Sequence record: OQ383623.1
Reading direction: 5' to 3' (one strand)
DNA length: 64,000 nucleotides
Shown: positions 3,069-45,200 of the stretch, in pieces
Layout: every line of letters starts with the position of its first letter
Numbering within the stretch: position 1 is the stretch's first letter
Program-made: the position numbers and the translations under genes
Notes under the pieces: generated by a model
The model's database searches: none
What the model saw: the letters and a program-made list of their open reading frames with translations, nothing else
What the model was told of the DNA's origin: nothing

Positions 3069-3548
3069 TCATTGCACAAGGCAACTACTTTTGTGCCGTT
3101 CGTAGGCATGATTAAAAGACTCTCTGTCTTCGCGATAGCTGCGTATGAGAGACTTAATCTGTCGTGACAAATCACGACTAATGTCCTGAGGGCTACGAGA
3201 ACCAGGGTCGAGATATATCCCGGAGGGTATATCATGAAGAGTGGGGCGAATAAACTCTTCACAAAGCGGTGCGGCCATCGGGGTGCGCCACCCCTTAGCT
3301 TCTGCGTAATTGTTCAACGACTTAGCGTACAGATAAACGTAATAAGCATAAGCGTTCACATCCGCAACAAACATTTTCCCTGCCAGCTTTTTCGCCTCAG
3401 GACTGTTCCCACCAGCATAAACTGGTGGGTGTTCTAAAGGACGAAAAGGCCAATCTCCGGTTGAGGAGTAATCTGGGTCTACGTGACGGATGGCTCCAGG
3501 GCATCCTGTCAACAATAGCACCAGTATCGCCACCAAAAATAACTTCAT
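3069..3548 (-). CDS. lipoprotein, possible o-spanin
   Basis: MKLFLVAILVLLLTGC lipobox; RBS GAGGAG; directly follows a TM plus coiled-coil gene. Confidence 0.6.
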   Translation of the reverse strand: MKLFLVAILVLLLTGCPGAIRHVDPDYSSTGDWPFRPLEHPPVYAGGNSPEAKKLAGKMFVADVNAYAYYVYLYAKSLNNYAEAKGWRTPMAAPLCEEFIRPTLHDIPSGIYLDPGSRSPQDISRDLSRQIKSLIRSYREDRESFNHAYERHKSSCLVQ

Positions 3549-3557
3549 GTATGCTCC

Positions 3558-4067
3558 TCATGGATTATTAAGCGTACTGATAATCTCCTGTCGGAAATCA
3601 TTTGCCTCCTGCGACCCTACCGGGCGAGAAGCGGCCTGGTATTTCTTGGCAGGTGGGCTAGACGGATTTAACGGTGCCGGCGGTGTTACCGGCTTGAGTT
3701 CTACAGGCGGAACCGCGGCCTCAGTGCCTGTTCCTGTTGGAGATTTGGTACCATCATATGGCGGTCGAGAACCCAGGCACGTGAAGAGACGATCGTACAA
3801 CTTATTGTTCTCCACTTCGCCATGATCGGACTTCTCTTTTAGCTCCTTATAGGATATCTCCAGATACTGAGTACGCGATTGAACGCTAACCAGTGTGTGG
3901 TATTGAACAATATAGGCATATGAGACAAATGCAGAGAACGCGATCAGTGCCACTATCACTAGTGTCACTATTTTCCCGGCTCGTGTTACTTTCTCCCCCT
4001 CGCCCGGTTTAAATGCTTCCCACAGCATTTGTAAGAATGGAAGCAGTTTGAAAACTGATGCTATCAT
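3558..4067 (-). CDS. inner-membrane protein, possible i-spanin
   Basis: One strong TM helix (IVTLVIVALIAFSAFVSYAYIV), then a coiled-coil-like segment and a Pro-rich tail; RBS GAGGTG before ATG 4067. Confidence 0.55.
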   Translation of the reverse strand: MIASVFKLLPFLQMLWEAFKPGEGEKVTRAGKIVTLVIVALIAFSAFVSYAYIVQYHTLVSVQSRTQYLEISYKELKEKSDHGEVENNKLYDRLFTCLGSRPPYDGTKSPTGTGTEAAVPPVELKPVTPPAPLNPSSPPAKKYQAASRPVGSQEANDFRQEIISTLNNP

Positions 4068-4091
4068 GCTCACCTCGGAGAGTTTTTAATT

Positions 4092-5471
4092 ATGTATGAT
4101 TTACAAGGCTTTATTCAAATAGCGGCTCTGATTGATAATGGCCCTGGCAACACCGCTCCGGTAGGTGAGTTGTCTGAGCTGTCATATTCGTTCGCTAAAA
4201 GCAAGCAGTATTTTACTAAAGAAAATCTGCAGGTGGAACTGGTTGCTTTTACTTCTAAACGTGACGAGTTGCCTATTAAGACCCCGGCCGTCTTTAGCGA
4301 CCACGTTCTTACTGTTTCCCAATGGATCTACCAACAGTCTATCCTGGGCAACTTAAGAAACGACGAAGTTGAATTCCAGCGTTTGCTGTTGGGGCAATTT
4401 AATAGTGTCATCAGCGGTGTTCAGTCTGGCGCGATGATTCAGACTAACAGTAACTGGTTCCCACGTTGGGTCAGTTGGAAACTTGAAACCACAGCAGATA
4501 AAGTCGAAGACCCATCTGATGTGAATAACCAGATTATTCTCTGGTTTGCTGATGAAGATTTCAATCAGGACTATACCGGATTTGAAATTGAAGTCCAAAT
4601 GCCGATATTACCGGTTGATACTTTCTTGGCTGTGAAATCTGTAGTCGAAAAGGCAATGGAAGGGTTCAACCTTCCGGATCACCATAATAAGATTAACGAA
4701 TTAGCTGACGGTTATCCGTACACTAGCCTGATTACTAACATCTATACTTGGCACGACCAGGAAGACTTTGATTCCACCTTACCGATACCGATGTCGGCTA
4801 TCATCTACGGACGCGCGGGTCGTAACCCGAGCAGGATTAAACAAGCGTTACGTGATTACATTTTGGCAAACTCCAGTTTTACTGTGGCGTTGGGTGTCAA
4901 GGTGTTCCCAGAAATCTTTACGACCACCAAGTTCACAATTGTTCCCGGTTGGTCAATTCGTGGGATTCCAAATGAGGAAGACGTTGCGGCATTATACTCG
5001 CCGATTCTCCCATATGATTTCTGGGTCAAAGCAATCTCCCGATTTGGGGAGTGGACTGTTCAAACCATTACGGAAAAAAATAGTGGAGCAATCTCAACTC
5101 CAACTACCGATGTAACGGATTTACCGTCCATCTATAAATCACTAAACGCTGTAGTTATCGCAGGCCCTGAAAACGATTCACGCAAAACGACCCTGCACGA
5201 TACGATTCCCGACTACGCATTAATCGGCACTAACAATGCAGATATTGCGAGAATGTCGAAGAAAACCACCGAGTGGCTGGACTTGTTCTTCCAGGCGTTA
5301 ATCGCAGCGGAAGAGTATCACCCACATTCCACCCCGCTGGATATCGTGAAGCTCGTAGACGACGTCGATCCTAACGTTTACTTCTACGTCTTCGAATTCG
5401 ATAACGTGGAGTATCGTGTCTTGGCCCGCAAAGCTGTTTGGGATGTCCCTGCGGCAGAGCCAGAAGCCTAA
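4092..5471 (+). CDS. putative virion structural protein (phiKZ-like conserved family)
   Basis: 459-aa ORF; the N-terminus GFIQIAALIDN...ELSELSYSF is recalled from jumbo-phage virion proteins near RNase H; not verified. Confidence 0.55.
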   Translation: MYDLQGFIQIAALIDNGPGNTAPVGELSELSYSFAKSKQYFTKENLQVELVAFTSKRDELPIKTPAVFSDHVLTVSQWIYQQSILGNLRNDEVEFQRLLLGQFNSVISGVQSGAMIQTNSNWFPRWVSWKLETTADKVEDPSDVNNQIILWFADEDFNQDYTGFEIEVQMPILPVDTFLAVKSVVEKAMEGFNLPDHHNKINELADGYPYTSLITNIYTWHDQEDFDSTLPIPMSAIIYGRAGRNPSRIKQALRDYILANSSFTVALGVKVFPEIFTTTKFTIVPGWSIRGIPNEEDVAALYSPILPYDFWVKAISRFGEWTVQTITEKNSGAISTPTTDVTDLPSIYKSLNAVVIAGPENDSRKTTLHDTIPDYALIGTNNADIARMSKKTTEWLDLFFQALIAAEEYHPHSTPLDIVKLVDDVDPNVYFYVFEFDNVEYRVLARKAVWDVPAAEPEA

Positions 5472-6162: not shown

Positions 6163-7296
6163 TTACTTGCCGATAATTTCACGCATCATTGCTTTGATTG
6201 TGGCAGCAGTACGTTTCTTTTTCGGCTGCTTGCGGATTTCCGCGTACAGCTTATCCAGGTTCAGAGTTTTCTGTACCTGTGCAGCGATATGCATTTGCTC
6301 TTCGTCGATTTTCACTTCGACGGTCTGCTCCTGCATCTTGCCCAGTTCCTGAATAACGCTGGCAACCGATACCGGATATGCGGTTGATTTCGGACGCTCA
6401 ATGCCGAGGGTGATGAAGATTTCATCATCGATGAACACGTTTTCGATATCAGCCAGGTTTTCCAGAATGATTTCATCGTGGTCTTCATCTTCCGACGCAT
6501 TCGGGTATGGACGTTTGTAGGTGTAATCCCACACGTCATAACCGAGTTTATCTGCGAGTTGTACGAAACCTTCCCAGGTTACTTCGCCGGGGTTGATAGT
6601 CTGGCCACGGAAACCGGGGTTGGCCGTAAAGACTTTCACCCAGTCGATGTTCGCGATGTTACGACACTCTTCCAGCGGCGCGTAACGATCTCCCACTTCG
6701 TCATTGTCAGTCTCTTCAACATGCTCCGCTTCACAACGCTCGAAAGTAACTGAGTGTGGTTTACCGTCGCCGAAGATAACGGAGGCAGCACGCCAGTCTT
6801 CGATAGTCCACTGGACATGAGTCAATTCAATGTAACAATGCCCAACCTTAGCACGGCCTTGTGGGGCACTTACTGGTTTAATCAACTCACCTGGTTCGAA
6901 GAAGAATCCGTCAGAATGTGCAATGGCATACCAGACACCATCAACGCCTTCAACGAGAATAGACCAGTTATAAGGCGCGTGGCAATTTTGGAAAGCTACG
7001 CCCAGCATACTTCCCCAACGGTCATCTGGCGAATATTTCAGTGGCGGCAGGTTATCAAACTGAAGAGTTTGAGAAGAAAGGCACAACTTATTACGCAGGT
7101 GCGGCAGCGGCAGATAAGCCTCCACATTGTTATCGACCAGCGCATTGTAAAGATCCGGGTTGATAACACCGGTGCCAGTGACGTGTTGTGCAATCAGAGC
7201 TTCTGAATATGCACGAATACCTTCGTAGCTAAGCACATACGCACGGTCACGTACTACACGAGCCATATCTTCGATTACGGAAATTGGAAATTGCAT
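6163..7296 (-). CDS. hypothetical protein
   Basis: Long ORF; RBS AAGGA before ATG 7296. Confidence 0.7.
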   Translation of the reverse strand: MQFPISVIEDMARVVRDRAYVLSYEGIRAYSEALIAQHVTGTGVINPDLYNALVDNNVEAYLPLPHLRNKLCLSSQTLQFDNLPPLKYSPDDRWGSMLGVAFQNCHAPYNWSILVEGVDGVWYAIAHSDGFFFEPGELIKPVSAPQGRAKVGHCYIELTHVQWTIEDWRAASVIFGDGKPHSVTFERCEAEHVEETDNDEVGDRYAPLEECRNIANIDWVKVFTANPGFRGQTINPGEVTWEGFVQLADKLGYDVWDYTYKRPYPNASEDEDHDEIILENLADIENVFIDDEIFITLGIERPKSTAYPVSVASVIQELGKMQEQTVEVKIDEEQMHIAAQVQKTLNLDKLYAEIRKQPKKKRTAATIKAMMREIIGK

Positions 7297-7356
7297 GTTA
7301 ATAGTCCTTATAAAAGTCAATGGTATTTTCAGATGATTAGTTACTGCTGTAAAAAA

Positions 7357-7623
7357 CTAGTTACGGTCGGAATTAAAGACGTGCCAGGTACTCCGCCAGC
7401 GAAAGAATCGGGTTATGAAACCACGTATGTGGTAGCCTGAGAACAACATCCAGATGGTAAGAAAGAGTTGCGCCCATGGGGACGTGAGTTCCATCAGATG
7501 TGCGACAATCGCACCGATTACCAACATTACCGTGGAGAATAACAAACTATACATCATCGGAATGTTGTGGCTATAGCGTTTCTCCATCCAGTAGAGAAAA
7601 TTTATTAAACGTTTCACGAACAC
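7357..7623 (-). CDS. small membrane protein
   Basis: Two hydrophobic helices in 88 aa. Confidence 0.55.
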   Translation of the reverse strand: MFVKRLINFLYWMEKRYSHNIPMMYSLLFSTVMLVIGAIVAHLMELTSPWAQLFLTIWMLFSGYHIRGFITRFFRWRSTWHVFNSDRN

Positions 7624-12647: not shown

Positions 12648-15147
12648 ATTTGATTATTACCCCTTCGTTATACACCGGTGGAAGCGTTACACCTTCTGGT
12701 TCTACGACACAGTAGGTGGCTTCGTTAAGTTTAGAATGAACTTCCGCTTCATGCGAAACGACCAGCAATTGAGAAAACTCTCCCGACAACGCCAACGATT
12801 TAATGAAGTTAACTAATCGGTTTTTGTGTTCTTCATCCATGCCTTCAGATGGTTCATCCAATAACAAAGGATAATTTTGTAAACCAAGTGCTTTATACGC
12901 CGTTAAACGAAACATCATGTTGAAAATGATACGCTGTGCTTTTGAACCTTTCTTCACGTCAGGTACCAGTTCTTCATGGTCTTTTAATCGCACCGGGAAA
13001 GTATAATCCAAATCCCCGTCGGTTAGATCGCACGGAATAACCTGCATCGGATATGCCCACACCATTTCGATATACCGATTCATTAAATCCATGATGCGGG
13101 TAATCGCAGCATAAAAGTAACGACGCAATAATCCTTTTTCGGGTGAGACGGCATTGATAATCAATCTGGCATGGTGATGCTCTTTAAGCAATTCAGCTTG
13201 CTCTTTTTCCAGTTCCGCTAAACGTGCAATAGCCCCTTCCATTTGACGAAACCGTTCACGAGCGGAAGTGTACGCATCGAGCTTCGCTTCGCGTCGGTTT
13301 AACAACTCACGAACCACGACGTTGTTAACGGAGATGTTCATTTCCGATACCAGAGATTCGTAGCCTTTTTGGAAACGTTCGATTGCTTCTTTGGTTTGTT
13401 GCAGTTGGGTGGTTTCGCGTTCCAGCTCATTAGCTTGTCTGCGGTATTCTATCAGTCGACGGTTAGCCCCGTCCAGTTGTGAACGGATATGTTCAATTTT
13501 CTGGCTCAGCGCACCATCAACGTTACCTACTGCGGCAACAGCCTCTTGCCATTCCCGTTCCGCTGTTGCAAGCTTCGCCGATTGACGCAGATACATCATG
13601 GCCGAATCTAGCTCTTCAGTAAAGGCACGTGCAATGGCACCGTAACGATCCCGCGCCGTGGTGAAGATATCCAGCTCCTGCAGTTTACGGAAAAACAAAC
13701 CGACAACAGGATGGTTGGAATACGACATGACGATTTCGCGAATCGTACGTAAGCTACGGACGTCCTCTTCAATCTCTTTGCGGTCACGCAAAAGACTATC
13801 CATTTCGTCTTTCAGCTGCTTCTTCCAACCTTCATTATCGTTGATGGCCTTTTCAATTTCAGGTAACGACTTACGAATCCCAGGACGGAAACGGTGGTTA
13901 CACTGTGGACAATCAACTTCTGCAGTTTCTAAGAAGTGTTGACGGTCGTGGTATAAACCGTGTAGCACATTCTCACAACGTTGCAGCTTTTCAGATAGAC
14001 CCGCAGAGGTTAAATCCATACCCTGTAAACGCTTCTCTAACGCTCCCAGGCGATCTGTTGTCTTTAACTGGTCCAGATGCATGGACAACGGTAAATTCCA
14101 GTTACAGGCATCGTTTAACGCGTTCTGAATGCTGTCCACATCAATGCGGGTACCTTCAAACAGAGCCGGGAACATCCAGTTCTGTTGGAACGTTGCCAGT
14201 TCCTGTTTTAAGCTGTCGATTGTTTGTTTTAGACCGGTATGGTTGCGCATCAGATACGCTTGACGCGACTCCTCATCCAGTAGCTGTGACAACTCTTTAT
14301 TGTACATGTTGCATTCAGTTTCAGCAGAGGCAGCTTGCTCACGCCAGGCAACTACACGACTTTGAAACTCGTTAATCAGTTCGTCAGAAGGCAGAACACC
14401 ATAACGTTCCATAATGAGTTTTACGGCCGGTTGCAACGAAGCAATGCGTTTCCGGATACTATCAACCGAAACGGCGTTATCTAAACCGGGTCTCGCTTCA
14501 ATTGTGCGGTTTAATTCCTGAAGCTCAGCATCGAGTTCTTTCAAACGAACTTCCAAACGTGCACGATCTTCTTCATCGTCCACCACGCGCATTTTTGCCT
14601 CACCGATTTTTCGTCCGGTGTGCTCAATGGCCCCACTTAAACTGGAAGCGAGTTTACGCAAACGTCGATAGCAACCAACAACGTACGTCAGATCAGATTC
14701 TGACATTAACGTAAACCATTTACGACGAACTTCGGTAGTGGCGTCAGTTAATAAGGTCTCACCATTAATTAACTCTTTGATTTCTTTGGTGATTCCGGTT
14801 AATTGCTCCACCATGGAGTTGTAAACTTTGGCGTTTACCGAGTCTACGATGGAGACACCTTTAGTGATATTGAAAATACTACAAGACAAAGAAGACCCAC
14901 GTCGCAGGACTTCAAACTTAAGACGGTCGTCCCCGACTAACGCGTAGTTAGTGTAGGAACCACCTTCACGGAATTCTGATTTTGCTGGAGCTAAGGGGAG
15001 AAAAACAGATAGGAGGCTTGTTTTACCGCAGCCGTTGCCACCGAGGATGATGGTAACGGTTGACTTAAGGGTGAAATCAAACGTTTCGATTTCATGTAAC
15101 CCCATGCCGGTAAATCCTTTCAAAATGATACGTTCGACCTTGAGCAT
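12637..15147 (-). CDS. sbcC: SbcC/Rad50-like SMC ATPase
   Basis: Walker A GGNGCGKT, long coiled coils, zinc hook CPQC, signature KGSKAQ, Walker B LLLDEP, H-loop VVSH. Confidence 0.92.
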   Translation of the reverse strand: MLKVERIILKGFTGMGLHEIETFDFTLKSTVTIILGGNGCGKTSLLSVFLPLAPAKSEFREGGSYTNYALVGDDRLKFEVLRRGSSLSCSIFNITKGVSIVDSVNAKVYNSMVEQLTGITKEIKELINGETLLTDATTEVRRKWFTLMSESDLTYVVGCYRRLRKLASSLSGAIEHTGRKIGEAKMRVVDDEEDRARLEVRLKELDAELQELNRTIEARPGLDNAVSVDSIRKRIASLQPAVKLIMERYGVLPSDELINEFQSRVVAWREQAASAETECNMYNKELSQLLDEESRQAYLMRNHTGLKQTIDSLKQELATFQQNWMFPALFEGTRIDVDSIQNALNDACNWNLPLSMHLDQLKTTDRLGALEKRLQGMDLTSAGLSEKLQRCENVLHGLYHDRQHFLETAEVDCPQCNHRFRPGIRKSLPEIEKAINDNEGWKKQLKDEMDSLLRDRKEIEEDVRSLRTIREIVMSYSNHPVVGLFFRKLQELDIFTTARDRYGAIARAFTEELDSAMMYLRQSAKLATAEREWQEAVAAVGNVDGALSQKIEHIRSQLDGANRRLIEYRRQANELERETTQLQQTKEAIERFQKGYESLVSEMNISVNNVVVRELLNRREAKLDAYTSARERFRQMEGAIARLAELEKEQAELLKEHHHARLIINAVSPEKGLLRRYFYAAITRIMDLMNRYIEMVWAYPMQVIPCDLTDGDLDYTFPVRLKDHEELVPDVKKGSKAQRIIFNMMFRLTAYKALGLQNYPLLLDEPSEGMDEEHKNRLVNFIKSLALSGEFSQLLVVSHEAEVHSKLNEATYCVVEPEGVTLPPVYNEGVIIKYAS

Positions 15148-15200
15148 GTTTGCCTTCTAATGAGAAAGTATTAGTCGTTCATATCCAAAAGGTCATGCGT

Positions 15201-15233
15201 AAAAAAGAAGAAATGGAACCCCGAAGGGTTCCA
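15201..15233 (-). terminator. intrinsic terminator
   Basis: TGGAACCC-UUCG-GGGTTCCA plus T-tract on the minus strand. Confidence 0.75.
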
Positions 15234-15243
15234 GAGAGGAGAG

Positions 15244-15870
15244 TTATTGCGGAATAAACTTACGGTGTCCGAGTGATTCCCAAAAACTATCGGTGCGCTC
15301 TTTGGTTAATTCGTACCACGCACGTCCGGCATCAGAATCGACAACCTTTAACGTTTCAGTAAGCAGGAATTTGAACAGTTCTGCGCTACGACCCGGTGCC
15401 ACGCCGTCGAGATATATCGGGATTAAATAACCGGTTTTGATTTCTTCGTACGGTTGCGATTGGTGCTGACCAACAACCCAGGCATCAGCAGCGCTACCGA
15501 CCAAAGTGGTGTTTACAGTTAACTCATCGGAAATCCAGTTAACTGTATCAGCCATTATTGAATCGCCATTGACGTAGAAGAAAACTAAACGTTTAGGTTG
15601 CTCCACCGAACCAGCCAAATCTAATGCAGTAGTTCCGGTGAAGATCGTATTATTGGGATTACGTTCTGCAATAGGTAGAGCAAACCACGCTTCTAGCTGT
15701 TCCCAGCTACGCGGCAGTGCTTCTTTAAACCACTTCACCAATCGCGGGTATTCCAGAAACCCTTCTACCTCTTCTTCCATCAGATTGATACGCAGTTTGG
15801 TATCCTGACGATTCGCTTTCTGACACGTCACCATGTCGTCGATGAAACGAATCAGGGTAATCTCGTTCAT
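15244..15870 (-). CDS. hypothetical protein
   Basis: RBS AAGGA; 208-aa ORF bracketed by terminators. Confidence 0.7.
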   Translation of the reverse strand: MNEITLIRFIDDMVTCQKANRQDTKLRINLMEEEVEGFLEYPRLVKWFKEALPRSWEQLEAWFALPIAERNPNNTIFTGTTALDLAGSVEQPKRLVFFYVNGDSIMADTVNWISDELTVNTTLVGSAADAWVVGQHQSQPYEEIKTGYLIPIYLDGVAPGRSAELFKFLLTETLKVVDSDAGRAWYELTKERTDSFWESLGHRKFIPQ

Positions 15871-15888
15871 GTTTAATCCTTCTTCAAC

Positions 15889-15917
15889 AAAAAAAGAAGG
15901 TAGCCCGTAGGCTACCT
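15889..15917 (-). terminator. intrinsic terminator
   Basis: AGGTAGCC/GGCTACCT stem then TCTTTTTTT on the minus strand. Confidence 0.75.
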
Positions 15918-15924
15918 CTCGTAT

Positions 15925-16425
15925 TTACAGCCCCATATGCATAAGGGAAATGATTGGGACCTTACGGCCACGAATCATTGCATATGGTTCGTACATTTGT
16001 GCGTTAGTTTCGAATAACTCACAGGCCGGAATACGGTCACCGGTGGAAAGTTGTAAGACTTCGATTTGGTCGCCCCAGAAATTGTTTACTAATACGTGGT
16101 CGACAGTGTTGTCTTCACGACCTTCAGGGGTTTTGCAATAAGTGGCTGCAGCGTACCAACCTTTGCGGTATACTTCATAACCCGCATGAAGCATCCGATA
16201 GTACGGACGTAGTTGTGGGGCATTCAACGCAGCATCTAGCCACTCGCTGTGAATGCTGTTAATCAATACGGTCGCTTCTTCTGGCCAGTCGGTGCGGTTT
16301 AGGGTTAACTCGCCTAACAGCTTTAACTTCCAGCCAGTGGAAAGAATGGCACGGGTACGTTCGGGATTGACGTTCATCTGAGTAAAGAAAGAAGAACGGG
16401 TATCGTCGAGAATGTTCATGTTCAT
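15925..16425 (-). CDS. hypothetical protein
   Basis: RBS AAGGA before ATG 16425. Confidence 0.65.
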   Translation of the reverse strand: MNMNILDDTRSSFFTQMNVNPERTRAILSTGWKLKLLGELTLNRTDWPEEATVLINSIHSEWLDAALNAPQLRPYYRMLHAGYEVYRKGWYAAATYCKTPEGREDNTVDHVLVNNFWGDQIEVLQLSTGDRIPACELFETNAQMYEPYAMIRGRKVPIISLMHMGL

Positions 16426-39768: not shown

Positions 39769-39776
39769 CTTGTTTA

Positions 39777-39822
39777 CGAGCCGGACTATGTTTATGGACA
39801 TAGTCCGCTCGTTCTACTTTTT
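39777..39822 (+). terminator. terminator-like hairpin between the fibre genes and the Cys-rich operon
   Basis: CGAG-c-CGGACTATG/CATAGTCCG-CTCG stem, then TTCTACTTTTT. Confidence 0.5.
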
Positions 39823-39833
39823 AAGGAAGCGTA

Positions 39834-40226
39834 ATGGCGATATCTATTAAAGACGTCAGAAACCGCGTCCAGATAGTCGAAGCTAACATGGCGACAGGCC
39901 CCCGCATCGAGGCGCAAGTGGCCTCTAAAGCCCATAATGCAGCAGACCGATTTGGGGGTTGGACGAAAGCACAGCTAGATTGCGGCGGGACATGTTCTTG
40001 GACGTGCTCTAACGGTTGCTCGCATGGCTGTTCGAGCTGTTCAGGAAGCTGTTCTGCTTCTTGTATCGGTAGCTGTTCTTCGACGTGTGGCGGTAACTGT
40101 TCTGGTTGCTCTGGTTGTTCTGGTGGTTGCAGTAGTAGCTGTACCGGTAACTGTTCAGGTGGTTGCGGCGGCTCTTGTTCCGCAAACTGCTCCGGGGCCT
40201 GCTCCGGCGGCTGTTCAGGTCGCTAA
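39834..40226 (+). CDS. Cxxx-repeat precursor-like peptide 1 (49-aa leader, 81-aa core, 21 Cys)
   Basis: Cys-free leader then near-continuous (C-x-x-x)n of Ser/Gly; RBS AAGGAAG; upstream of radical SAM genes. Confidence 0.85.
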   Translation: MAISIKDVRNRVQIVEANMATGPRIEAQVASKAHNAADRFGGWTKAQLDCGGTCSWTCSNGCSHGCSSCSGSCSASCIGSCSSTCGGNCSGCSGCSGGCSSSCTGNCSGGCGGSCSANCSGACSGGCSGR

Positions 40227-40236
40227 GGGGGATTAA

Positions 40237-40638
40237 ATGGCAATTGGATTAAAAGAACTGAATAACCGATTAAACACGATCGATGCAAACGCTTTAAAGA
40301 ACACCACGAATGTGCAAAACTACATTCGCAATAAAGCTACGAATAACGCCGACTTGTTCGCAGGTCAAGGCCGTTCGCACTATGACTGTGGTGGCACATG
40401 CTCTTTTAGTTGCTCGAGTTGTTCTGGCGGGTGTACTGGGTCTGCTACGGGTGGTTGTGGGTCGACTTGTTCCGCAAACTGTGTATCGGGCTGCAGCAGC
40501 AGCTGTACGGGTTGCAGCTCTTCATGTTCTGGTGGTTGTAGCGGAACGTGTACTGGTAACTGCTCTGGCGGCTGTGGCAAATCCTGCTCCGCAAACTGCT
40601 CCGGCGCGTGTTCTGGTGGTTGTTCAGGTCCTAACTGA
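40237..40638 (+). CDS. Cxxx-repeat precursor-like peptide 2 (50-aa leader, 83-aa core, 20 Cys)
   Basis: Paralog of peptide 1 in both leader and core; RBS GGGGA. Confidence 0.85.
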   Translation: MAIGLKELNNRLNTIDANALKNTTNVQNYIRNKATNNADLFAGQGRSHYDCGGTCSFSCSSCSGGCTGSATGGCGSTCSANCVSGCSSSCTGCSSSCSGGCSGTCTGNCSGGCGKSCSANCSGACSGGCSGPN

Positions 40639-40649
40639 CGGAGGCTTAT

Positions 40650-40856
40650 GTGATCAGTCTCAAGACTATTCGAAACCGTCTCGTTACGGTAGAAGGTTAC
40701 ATTACAACCGCACAGGCAAACAACTATATCGCTAACCAGGGCACCGTGTCGACCACAAATAACCTGGCTGGCTTACCGCTTTCTCACTATAACTGTAATG
40801 GTGGGTGTAGCTGGTCCTGCAGCGGAAGCTGTAGCCGTGGAGCGGGGAATCGATAA
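40650..40856 (+). CDS. Cxxx-repeat precursor-like peptide 3 (48-aa leader, 20-aa core, 4 Cys)
   Basis: GTG start with GGAGG; same leader motif and SHYNCNGGCSWSCS junction. Confidence 0.75.
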   Translation: MISLKTIRNRLVTVEGYITTAQANNYIANQGTVSTTNNLAGLPLSHYNCNGGCSWSCSGSCSRGAGNR

Positions 40857-40878: not shown

Positions 40879-41766
40879 ATGAAAAACGATTTGCATCTTG
40901 CGTATAAAACCACATTCAACCACCCGCTGCATCTATCTTCCCCAGATTCAGTGCGTGCACACCTTGCTGACAAAGTCAGACTGATTGCACAGATTCCTGG
41001 TGAGTGGCCAAAGGTTCGTGGTCGCTTCTTGACCGACAAGAAGAACTACACCGTAGAAAATACGTTTAAGATCCGTGATATGGTTGCAGAGGCCATCGTT
41101 ATCTTTAACGGCGATGGTAACTCTCGTGGCGTGTTAGTCGACGGTAAGTATTTCTTCAGTGAAGGGATTTTGAACAACAGCGTCGATTTAGAACTGATGT
41201 TTACACCGTTTGACGAACTTGAAGCAAAACCGATGGCGCGCCGTTGGTGGAGTCCGGACTATCTGGGCTCGTTCCCTTACTACTTTGTACTGGTACCTGC
41301 CGATACGGCAACGTATTTCGACACCGAACCATACATCGATATCGAGGGGTATAAAGAACTCGGCATCACCCGTTTAGCGGACATGATGGCGTATAGCTAT
41401 AAGTTCGTGTGGGATAAAAAGCGTTCTGTCTGGTATGCGCTGACTGACGATTTCGAAATCACCAAACGTATTCGTAAGCCGTGGATGCAACACCTGGTTC
41501 AAACCCGATATGGGGATTACCCGGCGACAGAAGCGGATTTGAGTAAGCTGGTAAGTTTCCTCTTAACGAAGGTGGATTTAACGAAAGAAGAAGCAGAAGC
41601 TGTTTCTGAGATTCGTGGTCGTTCGGTAACGTTGGCCGATTTGAAACGTCTGAACGAAAGACACGCCGACCTGAACAAAATTTTAGCTGCCTATCACGAC
41701 CCGATGCTACTGGTGCCTGGCGCTAATGTAGACGAAGATCCTTTATTCGCCATTGATTATATTTAA
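40879..41766 (+). CDS. hypothetical protein in the Cys-peptide/rSAM operon
   Basis: RBS GGAG; 295 aa; no recognised motif. Confidence 0.75.
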   Translation: MKNDLHLAYKTTFNHPLHLSSPDSVRAHLADKVRLIAQIPGEWPKVRGRFLTDKKNYTVENTFKIRDMVAEAIVIFNGDGNSRGVLVDGKYFFSEGILNNSVDLELMFTPFDELEAKPMARRWWSPDYLGSFPYYFVLVPADTATYFDTEPYIDIEGYKELGITRLADMMAYSYKFVWDKKRSVWYALTDDFEITKRIRKPWMQHLVQTRYGDYPATEADLSKLVSFLLTKVDLTKEEAEAVSEIRGRSVTLADLKRLNERHADLNKILAAYHDPMLLVPGANVDEDPLFAIDYI

Positions 41767-41788
41767 AAATATACTGGAGCAACCTGCA

Positions 41789-42703
41789 ATGACAGATCAA
41801 GTAGAATCCAGGATCTCGTCTGAACTGTACGACAAACCGTCAATTCTGTCGGTTGTCGCAACTTCTAAGTGTAACTTAGACTGTAGCTTCTGTGGAGGGG
41901 CTTATTACATGGATAGAGAAGATACTTCTCGTGAGTTTCAACGTGAAGAGATTCTCTCGATTTTAGAGAAGAATCCGGATATCGGTGAGATTCATTGGAC
42001 GGGCGGTGAGCCGCTGTTAGCGCAGCGTAAGATTGAAGACTTCGTGAACGAGTTGAAGGAGTCTCATCCGAACCTCCGTCATCACATGTACACCAACGGT
42101 TTAAAGATGCGTAAATCGCATCTGCCGTTGCTGAAACAGTTCGACCTTATCTTTGTGTCCATTGACGGCTACAAGAAGTCGGAACGTCCGTTTATGAACT
42201 TTGTAAACGGTGGTAATCACGAAGCGCTGGAAGTGCTGTACGAGCTGGACAACTATTACACCTGGGGTGTGATGACGCGTGACCAGTTAGGTGATAAACG
42301 CTGGTACGAAGATTTCATCGAGCTGCACCGAGCAATCTATCATTACCGTCCAGGTGGTGTGTCGTTGTTGTTTGATGCGATGATGCCGAAACCGTTATCG
42401 CCAGACCACGTCATGAACTTCATGTACGGGTATTGGAAAATACTCGACAATATCGAACGCCTTAACATGCAGAACGATTCTGAATGTGGGCTTGCGATCA
42501 GTAAAATGTTCGATACCGAGTGCAACACGTGCAGTGAAGTGCTGTGGCTTAACGCCGACGGTACGCAGGAGCAAATTCAGAACGCCCCAGAGATATTGGA
42601 AGTCGGCTGTAATCGCCTGGCGCGTTCTATCGGCGTTGATGCGTATAACTACATCAACCGTGTAATTTCTGCTAAGCGTAAACGGGCGGCGAACAATGAG
42701 TAA
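41789..42703 (+). CDS. radical SAM enzyme 1 (short C-terminus, no complete SPASM)
   Basis: CNLDCSFC (CxxxCxxC), WTGGEP, YTNG, VSIDG; RBS GGAG before ATG 41789. Confidence 0.9.
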   Translation: MTDQVESRISSELYDKPSILSVVATSKCNLDCSFCGGAYYMDREDTSREFQREEILSILEKNPDIGEIHWTGGEPLLAQRKIEDFVNELKESHPNLRHHMYTNGLKMRKSHLPLLKQFDLIFVSIDGYKKSERPFMNFVNGGNHEALEVLYELDNYYTWGVMTRDQLGDKRWYEDFIELHRAIYHYRPGGVSLLFDAMMPKPLSPDHVMNFMYGYWKILDNIERLNMQNDSECGLAISKMFDTECNTCSEVLWLNADGTQEQIQNAPEILEVGCNRLARSIGVDAYNYINRVISAKRKRAANNE

Positions 42704-44024
42704 TAGCGAACAGCAAATCCAGTACACACCACGCACGTATCAGGTTGTGACTAACTTGTCATGTAACCTGGACTGCGAATACTGCTACGAGCGTAAATAT
42801 CCGCGTAACAACAAAGTAGCAGACGTGATTGATTTTATCCACGCTTGTTTCGAGCGTGATAAAGATATCCCGAACGTTGAAGTCATCATCGATATCATCG
42901 GTGGTGAGCCGTTCATGCAGCCTAAACTTCTTTTGGCGGCCTTTGAAACCGCAGAGAAGTTATGCGCAGAACACAATCGCCCGTATATGTTCAGTATCTC
43001 CACGAACGGTACGCTTCTGGACCGTCCGCTGAACAAAGAAATTATCGAGCGCTGGAAAGACAAACTGTCTATTGGGGTCTCCATCGATGGTTTACCTGAA
43101 GTCCATGACAAATATCGTATCTTTACCACGACGCGTGAAGGGTCGTACGAAGCTGCGGTACGCGGTTACAATTATCTGAAGAGTGTTGGCATCGCTGAAC
43201 TGGGCGTAAAAGCGACGTTTACGATCGATACATTGCCGCACTATGCCGCCAGCATGAAATCGTTAATTGACATGTCCGGCGGTGGTACCATTTCTGGTAA
43301 CGTAACGTACGAAGATATCCTGCCGCGCCATATGGCGTTGGATATCGCGAACCAGATGATGGACGTGATGGACTACTGGATTGAGAAGGGTCTGCACACC
43401 AACCCGCGTAACACGATTACGCACATCATCCCGGATGGCCTGAACTTTATGGCAACTTGGGACCCGGATTGGCGTGACAAACTCTTACATGACGACTCTG
43501 TTCGTCTCGACCCAGAACGCCTGAAACCGTACTGCGGTACGTTGACGCACATGACCTGTCTCGGCTTTGATCGCAAGATTTACGGTTGTAACCGTTTCAT
43601 GTCCACGGTAACTTCCCGTTCTGCTGTAGCAGAACTGGTCGGTCGTGAGTTTGTGAGCCTGGACGGTGGTAAGCTGTTAGAAGAGATTCAAACGCAGTAC
43701 ACCAACTACCCAGAAACCTGTTTAGGGTGTCCGATGAAACACAGCTGCGGTAGCTGCGCAGCAGCATCGTACGAAAACGGTGAAGGTACACTGGAAGACC
43801 GTAAAGCGTATCACGCCGAGCGTCGTCAGTGTGGTTGGACTACTGCGAAGCTGATGGCGGCGGAATATTGGTATCAGAAAACTGGTACGACTCGCGCATC
43901 AGATTTGCATGATAAATCCATGTGCTATTGTTCACGTTGTGTACGCCAACGTGCTGAAGCAGAAAAATTACAAAACGGAGCCCAGAATGAAGTCAATACT
44001 GATTCACAATTTTACGAAGCGTAA
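42696..44024 (+). CDS. radical SAM/SPASM peptide maturase (Cxxx-repeat-target type)
   Basis: CNLDCEYC, IIGGEPF, ISTNGTLL, VSIDGLPEVHDKYR; SPASM Cys cluster YCG...TCLG...YGCNRF...CLGCPMKHSCGSC...QC. Confidence 0.92.
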   Translation: MSNSEQQIQYTPRTYQVVTNLSCNLDCEYCYERKYPRNNKVADVIDFIHACFERDKDIPNVEVIIDIIGGEPFMQPKLLLAAFETAEKLCAEHNRPYMFSISTNGTLLDRPLNKEIIERWKDKLSIGVSIDGLPEVHDKYRIFTTTREGSYEAAVRGYNYLKSVGIAELGVKATFTIDTLPHYAASMKSLIDMSGGGTISGNVTYEDILPRHMALDIANQMMDVMDYWIEKGLHTNPRNTITHIIPDGLNFMATWDPDWRDKLLHDDSVRLDPERLKPYCGTLTHMTCLGFDRKIYGCNRFMSTVTSRSAVAELVGREFVSLDGGKLLEEIQTQYTNYPETCLGCPMKHSCGSCAAASYENGEGTLEDRKAYHAERRQCGWTTAKLMAAEYWYQKTGTTRASDLHDKSMCYCSRCVRQRAEAEKLQNGAQNEVNTDSQFYEA

Positions 44025-44553
44025 ACTGCACTTGGTCGATCGCTTCCTGCGCAAAAGCAAGCTGTACAATGTGCACGCAATTGTGGCAGGGGAAGACTTC
44101 ACTGATGAAATCCAAAGCCTGTTGATTAAATACGGGCTGAATGTGATGATCCCGGTCTACTGCGTTGAGAAAGGACACGAGTCTGTCGCGGAAATCGAAA
44201 AGCGCAACCCTGGCTTTGAGAAGCGACTGCTTGCATACCCACGCCACAAAATCGAACTGCTACGTCACTCTATTGATGAAGCCAGTCCTGAAAGTTTAGT
44301 GGCGTTGGGCTTGTCATTCCCGCGGATGCGTATTCGTAACTTACGCTCCAATAACCCGGTTGACGCTTATTACACAGAGCGTCAAATCTTCGAAGAACAC
44401 CTGCTCCCGCAGTTGGAAGAAGAAGAGCAACACAACATTTCTCTGTTGTGGGCCGGTAACCTCGATCAGGACTTCCAGATGCTGGACTTCGGTTTGTTGT
44501 TAGAACTTGGCCTGATTGAGGAGGACGAATGTCTGTTACTGACAAAAGCTTAA
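43987..44553 (+). CDS. hypothetical protein in the Cys-peptide/rSAM operon
   Basis: RBS GGAG before ATG 43987; overlaps the rSAM end. Confidence 0.7.
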   Translation: MKSILIHNFTKRKLHLVDRFLRKSKLYNVHAIVAGEDFTDEIQSLLIKYGLNVMIPVYCVEKGHESVAEIEKRNPGFEKRLLAYPRHKIELLRHSIDEASPESLVALGLSFPRMRIRNLRSNNPVDAYYTERQIFEEHLLPQLEEEEQHNISLLWAGNLDQDFQMLDFGLLLELGLIEEDECLLLTKA

Positions 44554-45200
44554 CGAACGAAGAGATCCGCGCCCGTTATTTCCAGCGTGATTTGCCGATT
44601 GATCGTCACGGTAATTTCATGGAACGAATCGGTGCGCAGGATCAGGGCCGTACCGGATTTTGTGCATTACTCCATTACCATCTCATCGAAGGGATGTCTG
44701 ATAAAGAAGCCCTGGCACGCATGAAGCTGTATGAGATGTCGGAGATTGAAGCTAACTTCACATTGAAACGCACGAAAGAGTTTATTGCTAATGTGCTGGA
44801 GATTGACCTCGACGAAATTCGCGGGAATCTGAAATCTACCGCACGTTACATTTACGAAGACGTGCAGAAGATGCTGTTGGAACTCGACCACCGCTACGAA
44901 GATGAGCGCCATGGTTATATCGAGTTTGAAGGTAGTCACTTTCAAGCCGATGAATCGTCGCGTACCATCCTCGGTCAATACATTCAGGCAGATACCGCAC
45001 CAGAATACTGGCTCGATACGCTGAATACTAAGCACAGTCCGTTTACAGTAGCCCAATGTAAAGCGTTGCTGGCCGCTATTGTTGCACGTGACCAAGTGTT
45101 GCACTCAGCAATGGCAGATAACAAACGCCAAATCCGTGAGTTAGCTGAAAAGCGCGATTACACTGGATTAAAAACATTGTCCGAATCACTCGGCATGTAA
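44529..45200 (+). CDS. DUF4376-like tail-fibre assembly protein
   Basis: C-terminal YIEFEGSHFQADESSR...WLDTLNTKHSPFTVAQCKALLAAIV...K fits the DUF4376 pattern (G..fq.D..S...W...dN....lt..ql..l). Confidence 0.65.
   Translation: MSVTDKSLTNEEIRARYFQRDLPIDRHGNFMERIGAQDQGRTGFCALLHYHLIEGMSDKEALARMKLYEMSEIEANFTLKRTKEFIANVLEIDLDEIRGNLKSTARYIYEDVQKMLLELDHRYEDERHGYIEFEGSHFQADESSRTILGQYIQADTAPEYWLDTLNTKHSPFTVAQCKALLAAIVARDQVLHSAMADNKRQIRELAEKRDYTGLKTLSESLGM

Follow-up and report, generated by a model that had tools for sequence, protein, structure and literature searches.

Proteins that end in a tandem array of Cys-x3 repeats, with much Ser, Gly and Thr, and that are encoded beside a SPASM-type radical S-adenosylmethionine (SAM) enzyme are known from the families TIGR04114/TIGR04115 and PF27846 (tSAM_targ_Cxxx_rpt). 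No characterization of the chemistry of this CXXX-repeat family was found in the literature searched. The same arrangement is seen in the 64,000-nucleotide stretch of DNA analyzed here (the window), which corresponds letter for letter and position for position to the opening 64 kb of Salmonella phage MET_P1_082_240 (OQ383623.1), a jumbo phage of the genus Seoulvirus and a relative of SPN3US. The module in question encodes three small Cys-rich proteins (peptides A, B and C), an accessory protein, a short and a long radical-SAM enzyme (rSAM1 and rSAM2) and a gp162-like protein. The present analysis concerns the N-terminal "leader" shared by the three peptides and the junction at which it meets the Cys-repeat core. 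TIGR04114 was the best match of the peptides, at 18.4, 16.4 and 13.7 bits for A, B and C, respectively, all under the cut-off of 20, and TIGR04115 was the best named match of rSAM2, at 125.6 bits against a cut-off of 350. PF27846 is on record for the relatives at two of the loci compared (designated here by L numbers), L037 and L043. Beyond what is seen in TIGR04114/TIGR04115, the phage module contains a further radical-SAM enzyme, an accessory protein of ~290 residues, a Cys-Ser-Trp junction and a fiber context.

By analogy, the closest characterized counterpart is CrpA/CrpC. In the CrpA/CrpB/CrpC system of Methanococcus voltae, the SPASM enzyme CrpC puts ranthionine thioether links on CrpA, a 29-kDa Cys-repeat protein; the paralogous substrates CrpA and CrpB share their N-terminal 47 residues, and these N-terminal domains aid processing and enzyme engagement without being strictly required (PMC13692751). 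Unlike rSAM2, CrpC has a predicted recognition element (RRE) for peptides ribosomally synthesized and modified post-translationally (RiPPs) and belongs to family TIGR04463, for which rSAM2 scored 57.6 bits against a cut-off of 525 bits. The Crp repeats are 17 to 34 residues long with a C-x-x-Q/D motif, whereas the phage cores are virtually without Asp, Glu and Gln acceptors, and the Crp system is cellular rather than viral, without a fiber context. PapB was the second NCBIfam match of rSAM2 (113.6 bits against a cut-off of 340, over rSAM2 residues 22 to 357), but the Asp/Glu acceptors of PapB (PMC12373016) are absent from the phage cores. The closest solved structure to rSAM2 was that of the thioether-forming enzyme CteB (5WGG). 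This alignment begins at CteB residue 106, from which it was deduced that rSAM2 lacks the N-terminal domain of ~100 residues present in CteB.

In the HXS system (HxsA-D), phage DNA entry is blocked by a repeat-bearing protein, which is matured by two radical-SAM enzymes and a small protein (PMC13128918). The likeness lies in the logic of paired enzymes acting on a repeat-bearing protein rather than on a small peptide, while the repeats, the substrate, the bacterial defense context and the periplasmic export all differ. Ordinary tail fibers share with the phage proteins a tail or baseplate gene position, fiber-family N-terminal parts in the relatives and, in one fiber at L045, the motif preceding the junction. 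They differ in that no fiber with a C-terminal domain of Cys-x3 repeats and with radical-SAM enzymes dedicated to it has been described within the literature searched, and in that the SPN3US-type members have only 68 to 133 residues. In the published full text searched, neither these peptides nor PHROG 6085 nor phage fibers modified by radical-SAM enzymes were found described, and the system is probably an undescribed, phage-borne version of the CXXX-repeat/radical-SAM kind that comparison ties strongly to tail fibers. From the sequence comparisons below we favor, with moderate confidence, a reading of A, B and C as minimal fiber-like proteins whose N termini would be retained, with the junction as a boundary and likely docking site and with an enzyme-modified fiber part, rather than a free peptide, as the product.

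A, B and C are real genes for three paralogous small proteins (Table 1). Each is preceded by a Shine-Dalgarno-like sequence, and all three matched PHROG 6085 (function unknown) with E values of 3e-25 to 2e-41. Between orthologues, synonymous sites were saturated (0.62 to 0.93 differences/site), while nonsynonymous differences amounted to 0.09 to 0.28/site in all three classes. Purifying selection in the Cys frame was therefore deduced for all three leaders. The original prediction had described one leader pattern and one junction pattern common to the three peptides, and both were found to fit all three sequences at the coordinates given in Table 1. The leader is shared in its own right: when everything from the first Cys onward was removed, the alignment z values were 11.3 (A/B), 5.4 (A/C) and 7.8 (B/C), and none of 2,000 shuffles reached the score. 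The sole Phe, Trp or Tyr of the core likewise stands at the equivalent position in all three (W56 in A, F57 in B and W55 in C); the core of A also holds one His.

The hydrophobic a/d heptad spacing described for the leaders is also real, but the segment of ~19 residues, or about 2.5 heptads, is too short for a coiled-coil call. In a permutation analysis (20,000 shuffles), the a/d positions were occupied in 6 of 6 cases for A (reached by 92 shuffles), 5 of 6 for B (787 shuffles) and 5 of 5 for C (3,464 shuffles), corresponding to p values of about 0.005, 0.04 and 0.17, respectively. The helical hydrophobic moment of the leaders was not above that of shuffles because Lys and Arg are scattered round the helix.

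An alignment of 69 distinct leader-plus-junction sequences from at least 23 loci confirmed that the conservation of leader and junction goes far beyond recent duplication and beyond chance. It resolved into three layers. The first, an N-terminal segment of ~19 residues, carries strongly hydrophobic residues at positions 3, 5, 8, 12 and 15 in 91 to 100% of the 69 sequences and usually also at position 19 or 20; together with Met1, these hydrophobic residues give a 4-3-4-3-4 spacing. The three chains of a given phage have this segment in common, but it differs between lineages, and at L037 all three chains have another, longer N terminus. The second layer, the middle segment, is specific to class A, B or C and is kept within its class across genera. 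The third layer is the junction, which reads as a hydrophobic residue, x-Gly, about five residues, an aromatic residue, one further residue and then Cys-x-Gly-x-Cys-Ser-Trp, and it is the hallmark of the family. Both Cys residues and the Ser were present in 100% of the 69 sequences, the Gly between the Cys residues in 97% and the Gly about eight residues upstream in 94%. The position two ahead of the first Cys (aromatic or hydrophobic) held a hydrophobic residue in 96%, and the position after the Ser was Trp in 93% and Phe in 7%. This Trp is absent from more distant relatives with the same enzyme pair. The suggestion that the conserved Trp/Phe is a crosslink partner describes a possible role, one that the enzyme family would not require.

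Other searches with these sequences gave little. A Pfam scan of A, B and C returned no match even at E ≤ 10, and a PDB sequence search with the leader profile returned spurious DARPin and SMC6 matches alone (E ≥ 0.2). A word-indexed homologue search with residues 1 to 60 of A found none because too few 5-mers are shared. In a tblastn search of C against 50,697 phage records, the SPN3US-like clade alone was matched. The leader had also been proposed to dock onto the coiled-coil fiber gene just upstream, which encodes a gp167-like protein, and no link between the two was found by the N-terminal-motif hidden Markov model (HMM) in the window, in the neighborhood of L037 or by fusion evidence. No gp167-like gene lies near the distant L037 module, and a Rosetta-stone link between gp167 and the Cys proteins via L049 was rejected, as there is no fusion. 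The idea that the N-terminal motif is a docking tag common to other virion proteins was rejected as well, since its HMM matched A, B and C alone among the six-frame open reading frames (ORFs) of the window. The short motif before the junction, a candidate general fiber motif, was found nowhere else in the window by a regular-expression scan; in favor of this assignment there is only the fiber at L045, which bears it.

The cores consist of 28% Ser, 25% Cys, 25% Gly and 9% Thr. Among 962 steps from one Cys to the next, 82% were i to i+4 (Cys-x3) and 15.5% were i to i+3 (Cys-x2), so the repeats are of the tandem Cys-x-x-x type. No Asp or Glu occurs in the cores of A, B and C, and each makes up 0.1% of the residues over 48 family cores. 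Within the jumbo clade, A has exactly 21 Cys in every member, B has 20 to 23 and C has 2 to 5; in Derbicusvirus-like phages, the short chain C has no Cys beyond the junction pair. That A keeps 21 Cys while the residues between them vary suggests that its length or its number of units is constrained.

The link to tail fibers came from the relatives. An exhaustive profile search with leader plus junction against 1.84 billion proteins gave 28 proteins, of which 27 have this architecture and one, P0019, was an apparent false positive; a search with rSAM2 separately gave relatives at 32 to 39% identity. Elsewhere among phages and prophages, tail-fiber-like proteins of 210 to 570 residues, encoded in tail or baseplate blocks, were found to terminate in the junction and Cys-repeat tail. 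The gene order in a Deferribacter abyssi prophage is NlpC/P60, a GpJ-like protein, a PHROG "tail fiber protein", a 316-residue protein, a 302-residue Cys protein, the accessory homologue and then the short and long radical-SAM enzymes. The 302-residue protein is built of repeated His-x-His...Arg-Tyr...Thr-Glu units followed by the junction and 28 Cys. The same gene layout, with proteins of 257/258 residues, was found in a Desulfoluna prophage and at L047. On a 213-kb contig, a 568-residue protein encoded after a baseplate-wedge gene also ends in the junction and 28 Cys. In P0024 and P0027 (211 to 213 residues), the N-terminal domain matched PHROG 5073 "tail fiber protein" (E = 2e-5 to 4e-5). 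Here the fiber domain is followed by a segment that aligns with the beginning of PHROG 6085 (the a/d segment), then by the junction and the repeats, and the neighboring genes are those of a collagen-like or lectin-like protein and of the two enzymes. Weaker fiber matches were those of the L041 protein to Pfam PTR ("Phage tail repeat like") and of the L049 protein to PHROG 3737. At L045, the conventional neighboring fiber of 527 residues has the same short pre-junction motif without a Cys tail.

Homology or fusion to fiber domains was found for the relatives and not for A, B and C themselves. Overall, the N-terminal part of the relatives ranges from 14 to 456 residues while the enzymes stay 32 to 53% identical, with tail-fiber-like regions of 140 to 456 residues replacing the leader in some. 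Chain C can in addition carry an extra C-terminal domain of 140 residues (L013) or 80 residues (L014). At L046 (about 3939-4240), L048 (5889-6221) and L049 (5353-6168), the Cys tail and the enzyme pair are kept, there is no Cys-Ser-Trp, and rSAM2 is 32 to 38% identical; the part ahead of the Cys repeats at L046 is only about 14 residues long. Loci whose radical-SAM enzymes are only 26% identical had no Cys-tailed protein at all.

The order A-B-C, two long chains and one short, is kept in Seoulvirus, Machinavirus, Erskinevirus, Wellingtonvirus and Derbicusvirus, with rSAM2 identity down to 63%. The triad is also present in the uncultured relatives L013, L014 and L019 to L034 and in the distant metagenomic lineages L037 (rSAM2 53% identical) and L040. 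The peptides, the accessory protein and the short and long radical-SAM enzymes recur together at L037, L040, L016, L041 and L049, joined by the gp162-like protein at L037 and L040. In the distant modules, rSAM2 was 35 to 53% identical and rSAM1 24 to 29%, and the accessory protein was recognized at 29% identity over its full length or at an hhalign probability of 97%. In the window, the module lies between the virion fiber proteins gp167/gp168 and a DUF4376 tail protein, and a DUF4376 protein also adjoins it at L048. A location in a tail, baseplate or fiber block was found in the window and at L041, L043, L045, L047, L048 and L049, with L037 as the exception.

Attention was also given to the enzymes. 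The C-terminal half of rSAM2 contains eight invariant Cys in a SPASM-like arrangement. Only about 20 residues (rSAM2) and about 36 residues (rSAM1) precede the CX3CX2C motif, so neither has an N-terminal extension the size of an RRE. No RRE was detectable in the module by Pfam, NCBIfam and PHROGs, by the CteB alignment or by a fold search with the accessory-protein model, although a small or novel binding element is conceivable. Nor was any leader peptidase or exporter family found by Pfam, NCBIfam and PHROGs within 38.5-45.2 kb. The accessory protein has 49 homologues, including those at L037, L041, L016 and L049. Its AlphaFold2 model, built from 44 homologues, had a pLDDT (predicted local distance difference test) of 90.7 and a pTM (predicted template modeling score) of 0.86; a Foldseek search with this model gave no PDB fold match (best E = 0.13) and, in BFVD, its own orthologue only. 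The protein co-varies with lineage, its C-terminal part being conserved and its N-terminal part divergent. The rSAM2 of the jumbo clade extends past the SPASM-like region by ~45 C-terminal residues (window about 43900-44024) with a small Cys cluster, an extension that relatives of 358 to 385 residues lack.

None of A, B and C is annotated in the GenBank record of the window. The SPN3US reference proteome lacks all three, as A and C are unannotated and B is represented off-frame: SPN3US gp166 (AEP83999.1 / YP_009153460.1) is a Val/Ala/Leu-rich artefact read over B (window 40310-40735; L007:3609-3944). In the records of CR5, Phobos and pEa_SNUABM_29, reverse-strand ORFs are annotated over the Cys-repeat DNA (L004, L005 and L012, about 3100-4000). 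The Cys-repeat DNA is open in several frames, and the alternative-frame and reverse-strand ORFs were rejected as genes because cross-genus conservation is confined to the Cys frame.

In the mechanism proposed, A, B and C would be the substrates of the accessory protein, rSAM1, the SPASM-type rSAM2 and the gp162-like protein. Their N-terminal ~49 residues would be kept and enter the virion as the virion-proximal attachment or oligomerization part. The junction would separate the fiber-type part from the modified domain, and among the elements seen it is the strongest candidate for a place at which the maturases dock or find their register. The two radical-SAM enzymes would then install covalent crosslinks in the Cys-x3 repeats, most likely thioethers, judging from the enzyme families nearest to rSAM2. 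The product would be a stapled C-terminal domain, presumably distal. The original prediction had left open whether the leader is a maturase-recognition element or a trimerizing coiled coil that docks onto the fiber. In its general form, the structural alternative is favored by the lineage-specific N-terminal part, its replacement by fiber regions, the C-terminal extensions and the failure to detect an RRE, peptidase or exporter, but recognition is better placed on the junction. Since the N-terminal part is swapped for fiber shafts between lineages, it probably does not provide the sequence by which such conserved enzymes recognize their substrates; the junction is kept beside the modified domain and is thus the better candidate recognition element.

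Several findings weigh against this assignment of A, B and C to the fiber. At L037, the module lies among non-structural-looking genes rather than tail genes. In the virion proteome published for SPN3US, gp167 to gp173 are listed and none of gp161 to gp166 (PMC5694885), yet it is silent on A, B and C because the reference annotation lacks all three, so this absence says nothing. Because L046, L048 and L049 are without Cys-Ser-Trp, the junction was deduced to be the hallmark of a subfamily and not a universal requirement. Finally, several precursors with a shared conserved N-terminal region are a classic RiPP pattern too. A classical RiPP pathway would have the leader of ~49 residues bound by the accessory protein or the radical-SAM enzymes, the core crosslinked, the leader cut off and a free, non-structural peptide released at lysis. 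We consider this unlikely, if still credible. Neither an RRE nor a peptidase nor an exporter was detected, the N-terminal part can be as short as 14 or as long as 456 residues and is often fiber-like, C-type members bear folded-looking C-terminal extensions, and the apparent length constraint on A in the jumbo clade does not fit. It agrees, on the other hand, with the leader/core-like layout, with the N-terminal motif common to three precursors, with the position of the L037 module outside a tail block and with an accessory protein whose C-terminal part is conserved and N-terminal part divergent between lineages. The nearest enzyme families, TIGR04115, PapB and CteB, are moreover peptide maturases, and CrpA and CrpB provide a precedent for a shared N-terminal region of 47 residues that aids processing (PMC13692751).

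The same enzyme matches speak against the view that the Cys-x3 repeats are an unmodified metal- or iron-sulfur-binding domain and that the radical-SAM enzymes serve another substrate or only deliver clusters. So does the strict occurrence of the Cys-tailed protein with the long/short radical-SAM pair and the accessory protein in every lineage examined (jumbo phages and prophages). The high content of Cys (25%), Ser (28%) and Gly (25%), the regular spacing and the lack of a PapB-type Asp/Glu acceptor would suit metal binding, a possibility also discussed by the authors of the CrpA study (PMC13692751); we nevertheless regard this explanation as very unlikely. An HXS-like effector for phage-phage or host conflict was suggested by the combination of paired long and short radical-SAM enzymes, a small protein and a repeat protein, by weak matches of rSAM2 to HxsB (75.1 bits) and of rSAM1 to HxsC (45 bits) and by the location of the L037 module near an Acb2/Tad1-like gene. 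Neither score comes near the cut-off of its family (370 and 267.9 bits, respectively), His-x-Ser repeats are missing, the N termini are not signal-peptide-like by sequence, and the PADLOC models gave generic radical-SAM core matches alone with no defense-specific match. As the fiber fusions and tail-block neighborhoods also point to a virion role, an effector was deemed extremely improbable.

A more specific form of the fiber reading would be an in-register A:B:C heterotrimeric mini-fiber, which we rate as quite unlikely. In such an assembly, the a/d segments would form a three-chain bundle, the Cys-x-Gly-x-Cys pair found in every chain would serve as an inter-chain thioether knot made by the radical-SAM enzymes, and the long chains would continue as a stapled two-strand tail. 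The invariable presence of two long chains and one short, the conserved class-specific middle segments and the leader lengths co-varying per phage (46 to 50 residues in the jumbo clade, 55 to 63 at L037 and 48 to 53 at L040) fit the heterotrimer without proving it. Disulfide rings tie the three chains of fibrinogen together, and by analogy the proposed knot would be their cytoplasm-compatible thioether counterpart.

Table 1. Coordinates in the window of the three peptides, the remainder of the module and the flanking features
Feature	Coordinates	Strand	Details
gp167-like coiled-coil virion protein, 412 aa	38530..39768	+	PHROG 2163 virion structural protein, E = 2e-109; upstream neighbor
Intergenic hairpin then U-rich run	39776..39812	+	Between gp167-like stop and start of A; RNA fold -24.1 kcal/mol, z = -4.35, 0/200 shuffles as stable
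Peptide A, 130 aa, 21 Cys	39834..40226	+	N-terminal a/d segment 39834-39890; junction F40-S59 39951-40010; C50 (first Cys) 39981-39983; W56 39999-40001; Cys-repeat tail to 40223
Peptide B, 133 aa, 20 Cys	40237..40638	+	N-terminal segment 40237-40296; junction F41-S60 40357-40416; C51 (first Cys) 40387-40389; F57 40405-40407
Peptide C, 68 aa, 4 Cys	40650..40856	+	GTG start; without long repeat tail; N-terminal segment 40650-40703; junction L39-S58 40764-40823; C49 (first Cys) 40794-40796; W55 40812-40814
Accessory protein, 295 aa	40879..41766	+	PHROG 8030, E = 1e-149; conserved module member
rSAM1, short radical-SAM enzyme	41753..42703	+	PF04055, 58.7 bits; ORF TTG start 41753, record start 41789
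rSAM2, long radical-SAM enzyme	42696..44024	+	SPASM-like Cys-rich C-terminal half; TIGR04115 best NCBIfam match, 125.6 bits
gp162-like protein	43909..44553	+	PHROG 7988; module companion in L037 and L040
DUF4376 tail-associated protein	44529..45200	+	PF14301, 38.8 bits; PHROG 2837 "tail protein" weak match; downstream neighbor

Upstream of the peptides, a 1742-residue gp168-like fiber/baseplate protein is encoded in addition to the gp167-like protein, and purified SPN3US virions contain both the gp167 and gp168 proteins (PMC5694885 Suppl. Table 1; PMC5105663). The hairpin between the gp167-like gene and A was missed by a simple terminator scan and could be a terminator, an attenuator or a transcript-stability element. 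The start of the gp162-like gene is ambiguous, as the ORF begins at 43909 and the record has 43987; both overlap the end of rSAM2. Extra radical-SAM genes were observed at some loci. In two uncultured Seoulvirus-like relatives (L019:2542-3453 and the same place in L034), a further short radical-SAM gene lies between A and B besides the usual copy, and in Desulfoluna-type modules (L045:5003-5977; L047:6087-6992), a third radical-SAM gene lies between the short and long ones. The L037/L038 region (7220-7441, 14515-16131) is near a precomputed Acb2/Tad1-hairpin Pfam match, a nucleotidyltransferase and a GroEL-like chaperonin. In the SPFM records LR535901, LR535908, LR535911 and LR535912, among others, the match to the region is broken up entirely into short pieces, 40 or more of them at about 99% identity, which points to assemblies of low quality; the radical-SAM and accessory proteins of these phages look fragmented in the protein database.

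If the fiber assignment is true, dedicated radical-SAM enzymes staple a Cys-repeat domain onto the fiber ends of some phages, and RiPP-type chemistry would serve virion architecture beyond its role in secreted products. The SPN3US-like jumbo phages would gain a widespread group of components that have escaped annotation and hence have been invisible to published virion proteomics. The uncharacterized CXXX-repeat radical-SAM family would likewise gain a concrete biological setting in which its chemistry could be read. For these proteins, the junction motif, rather than the N-terminal "leader", would become the conserved functional element of interest.

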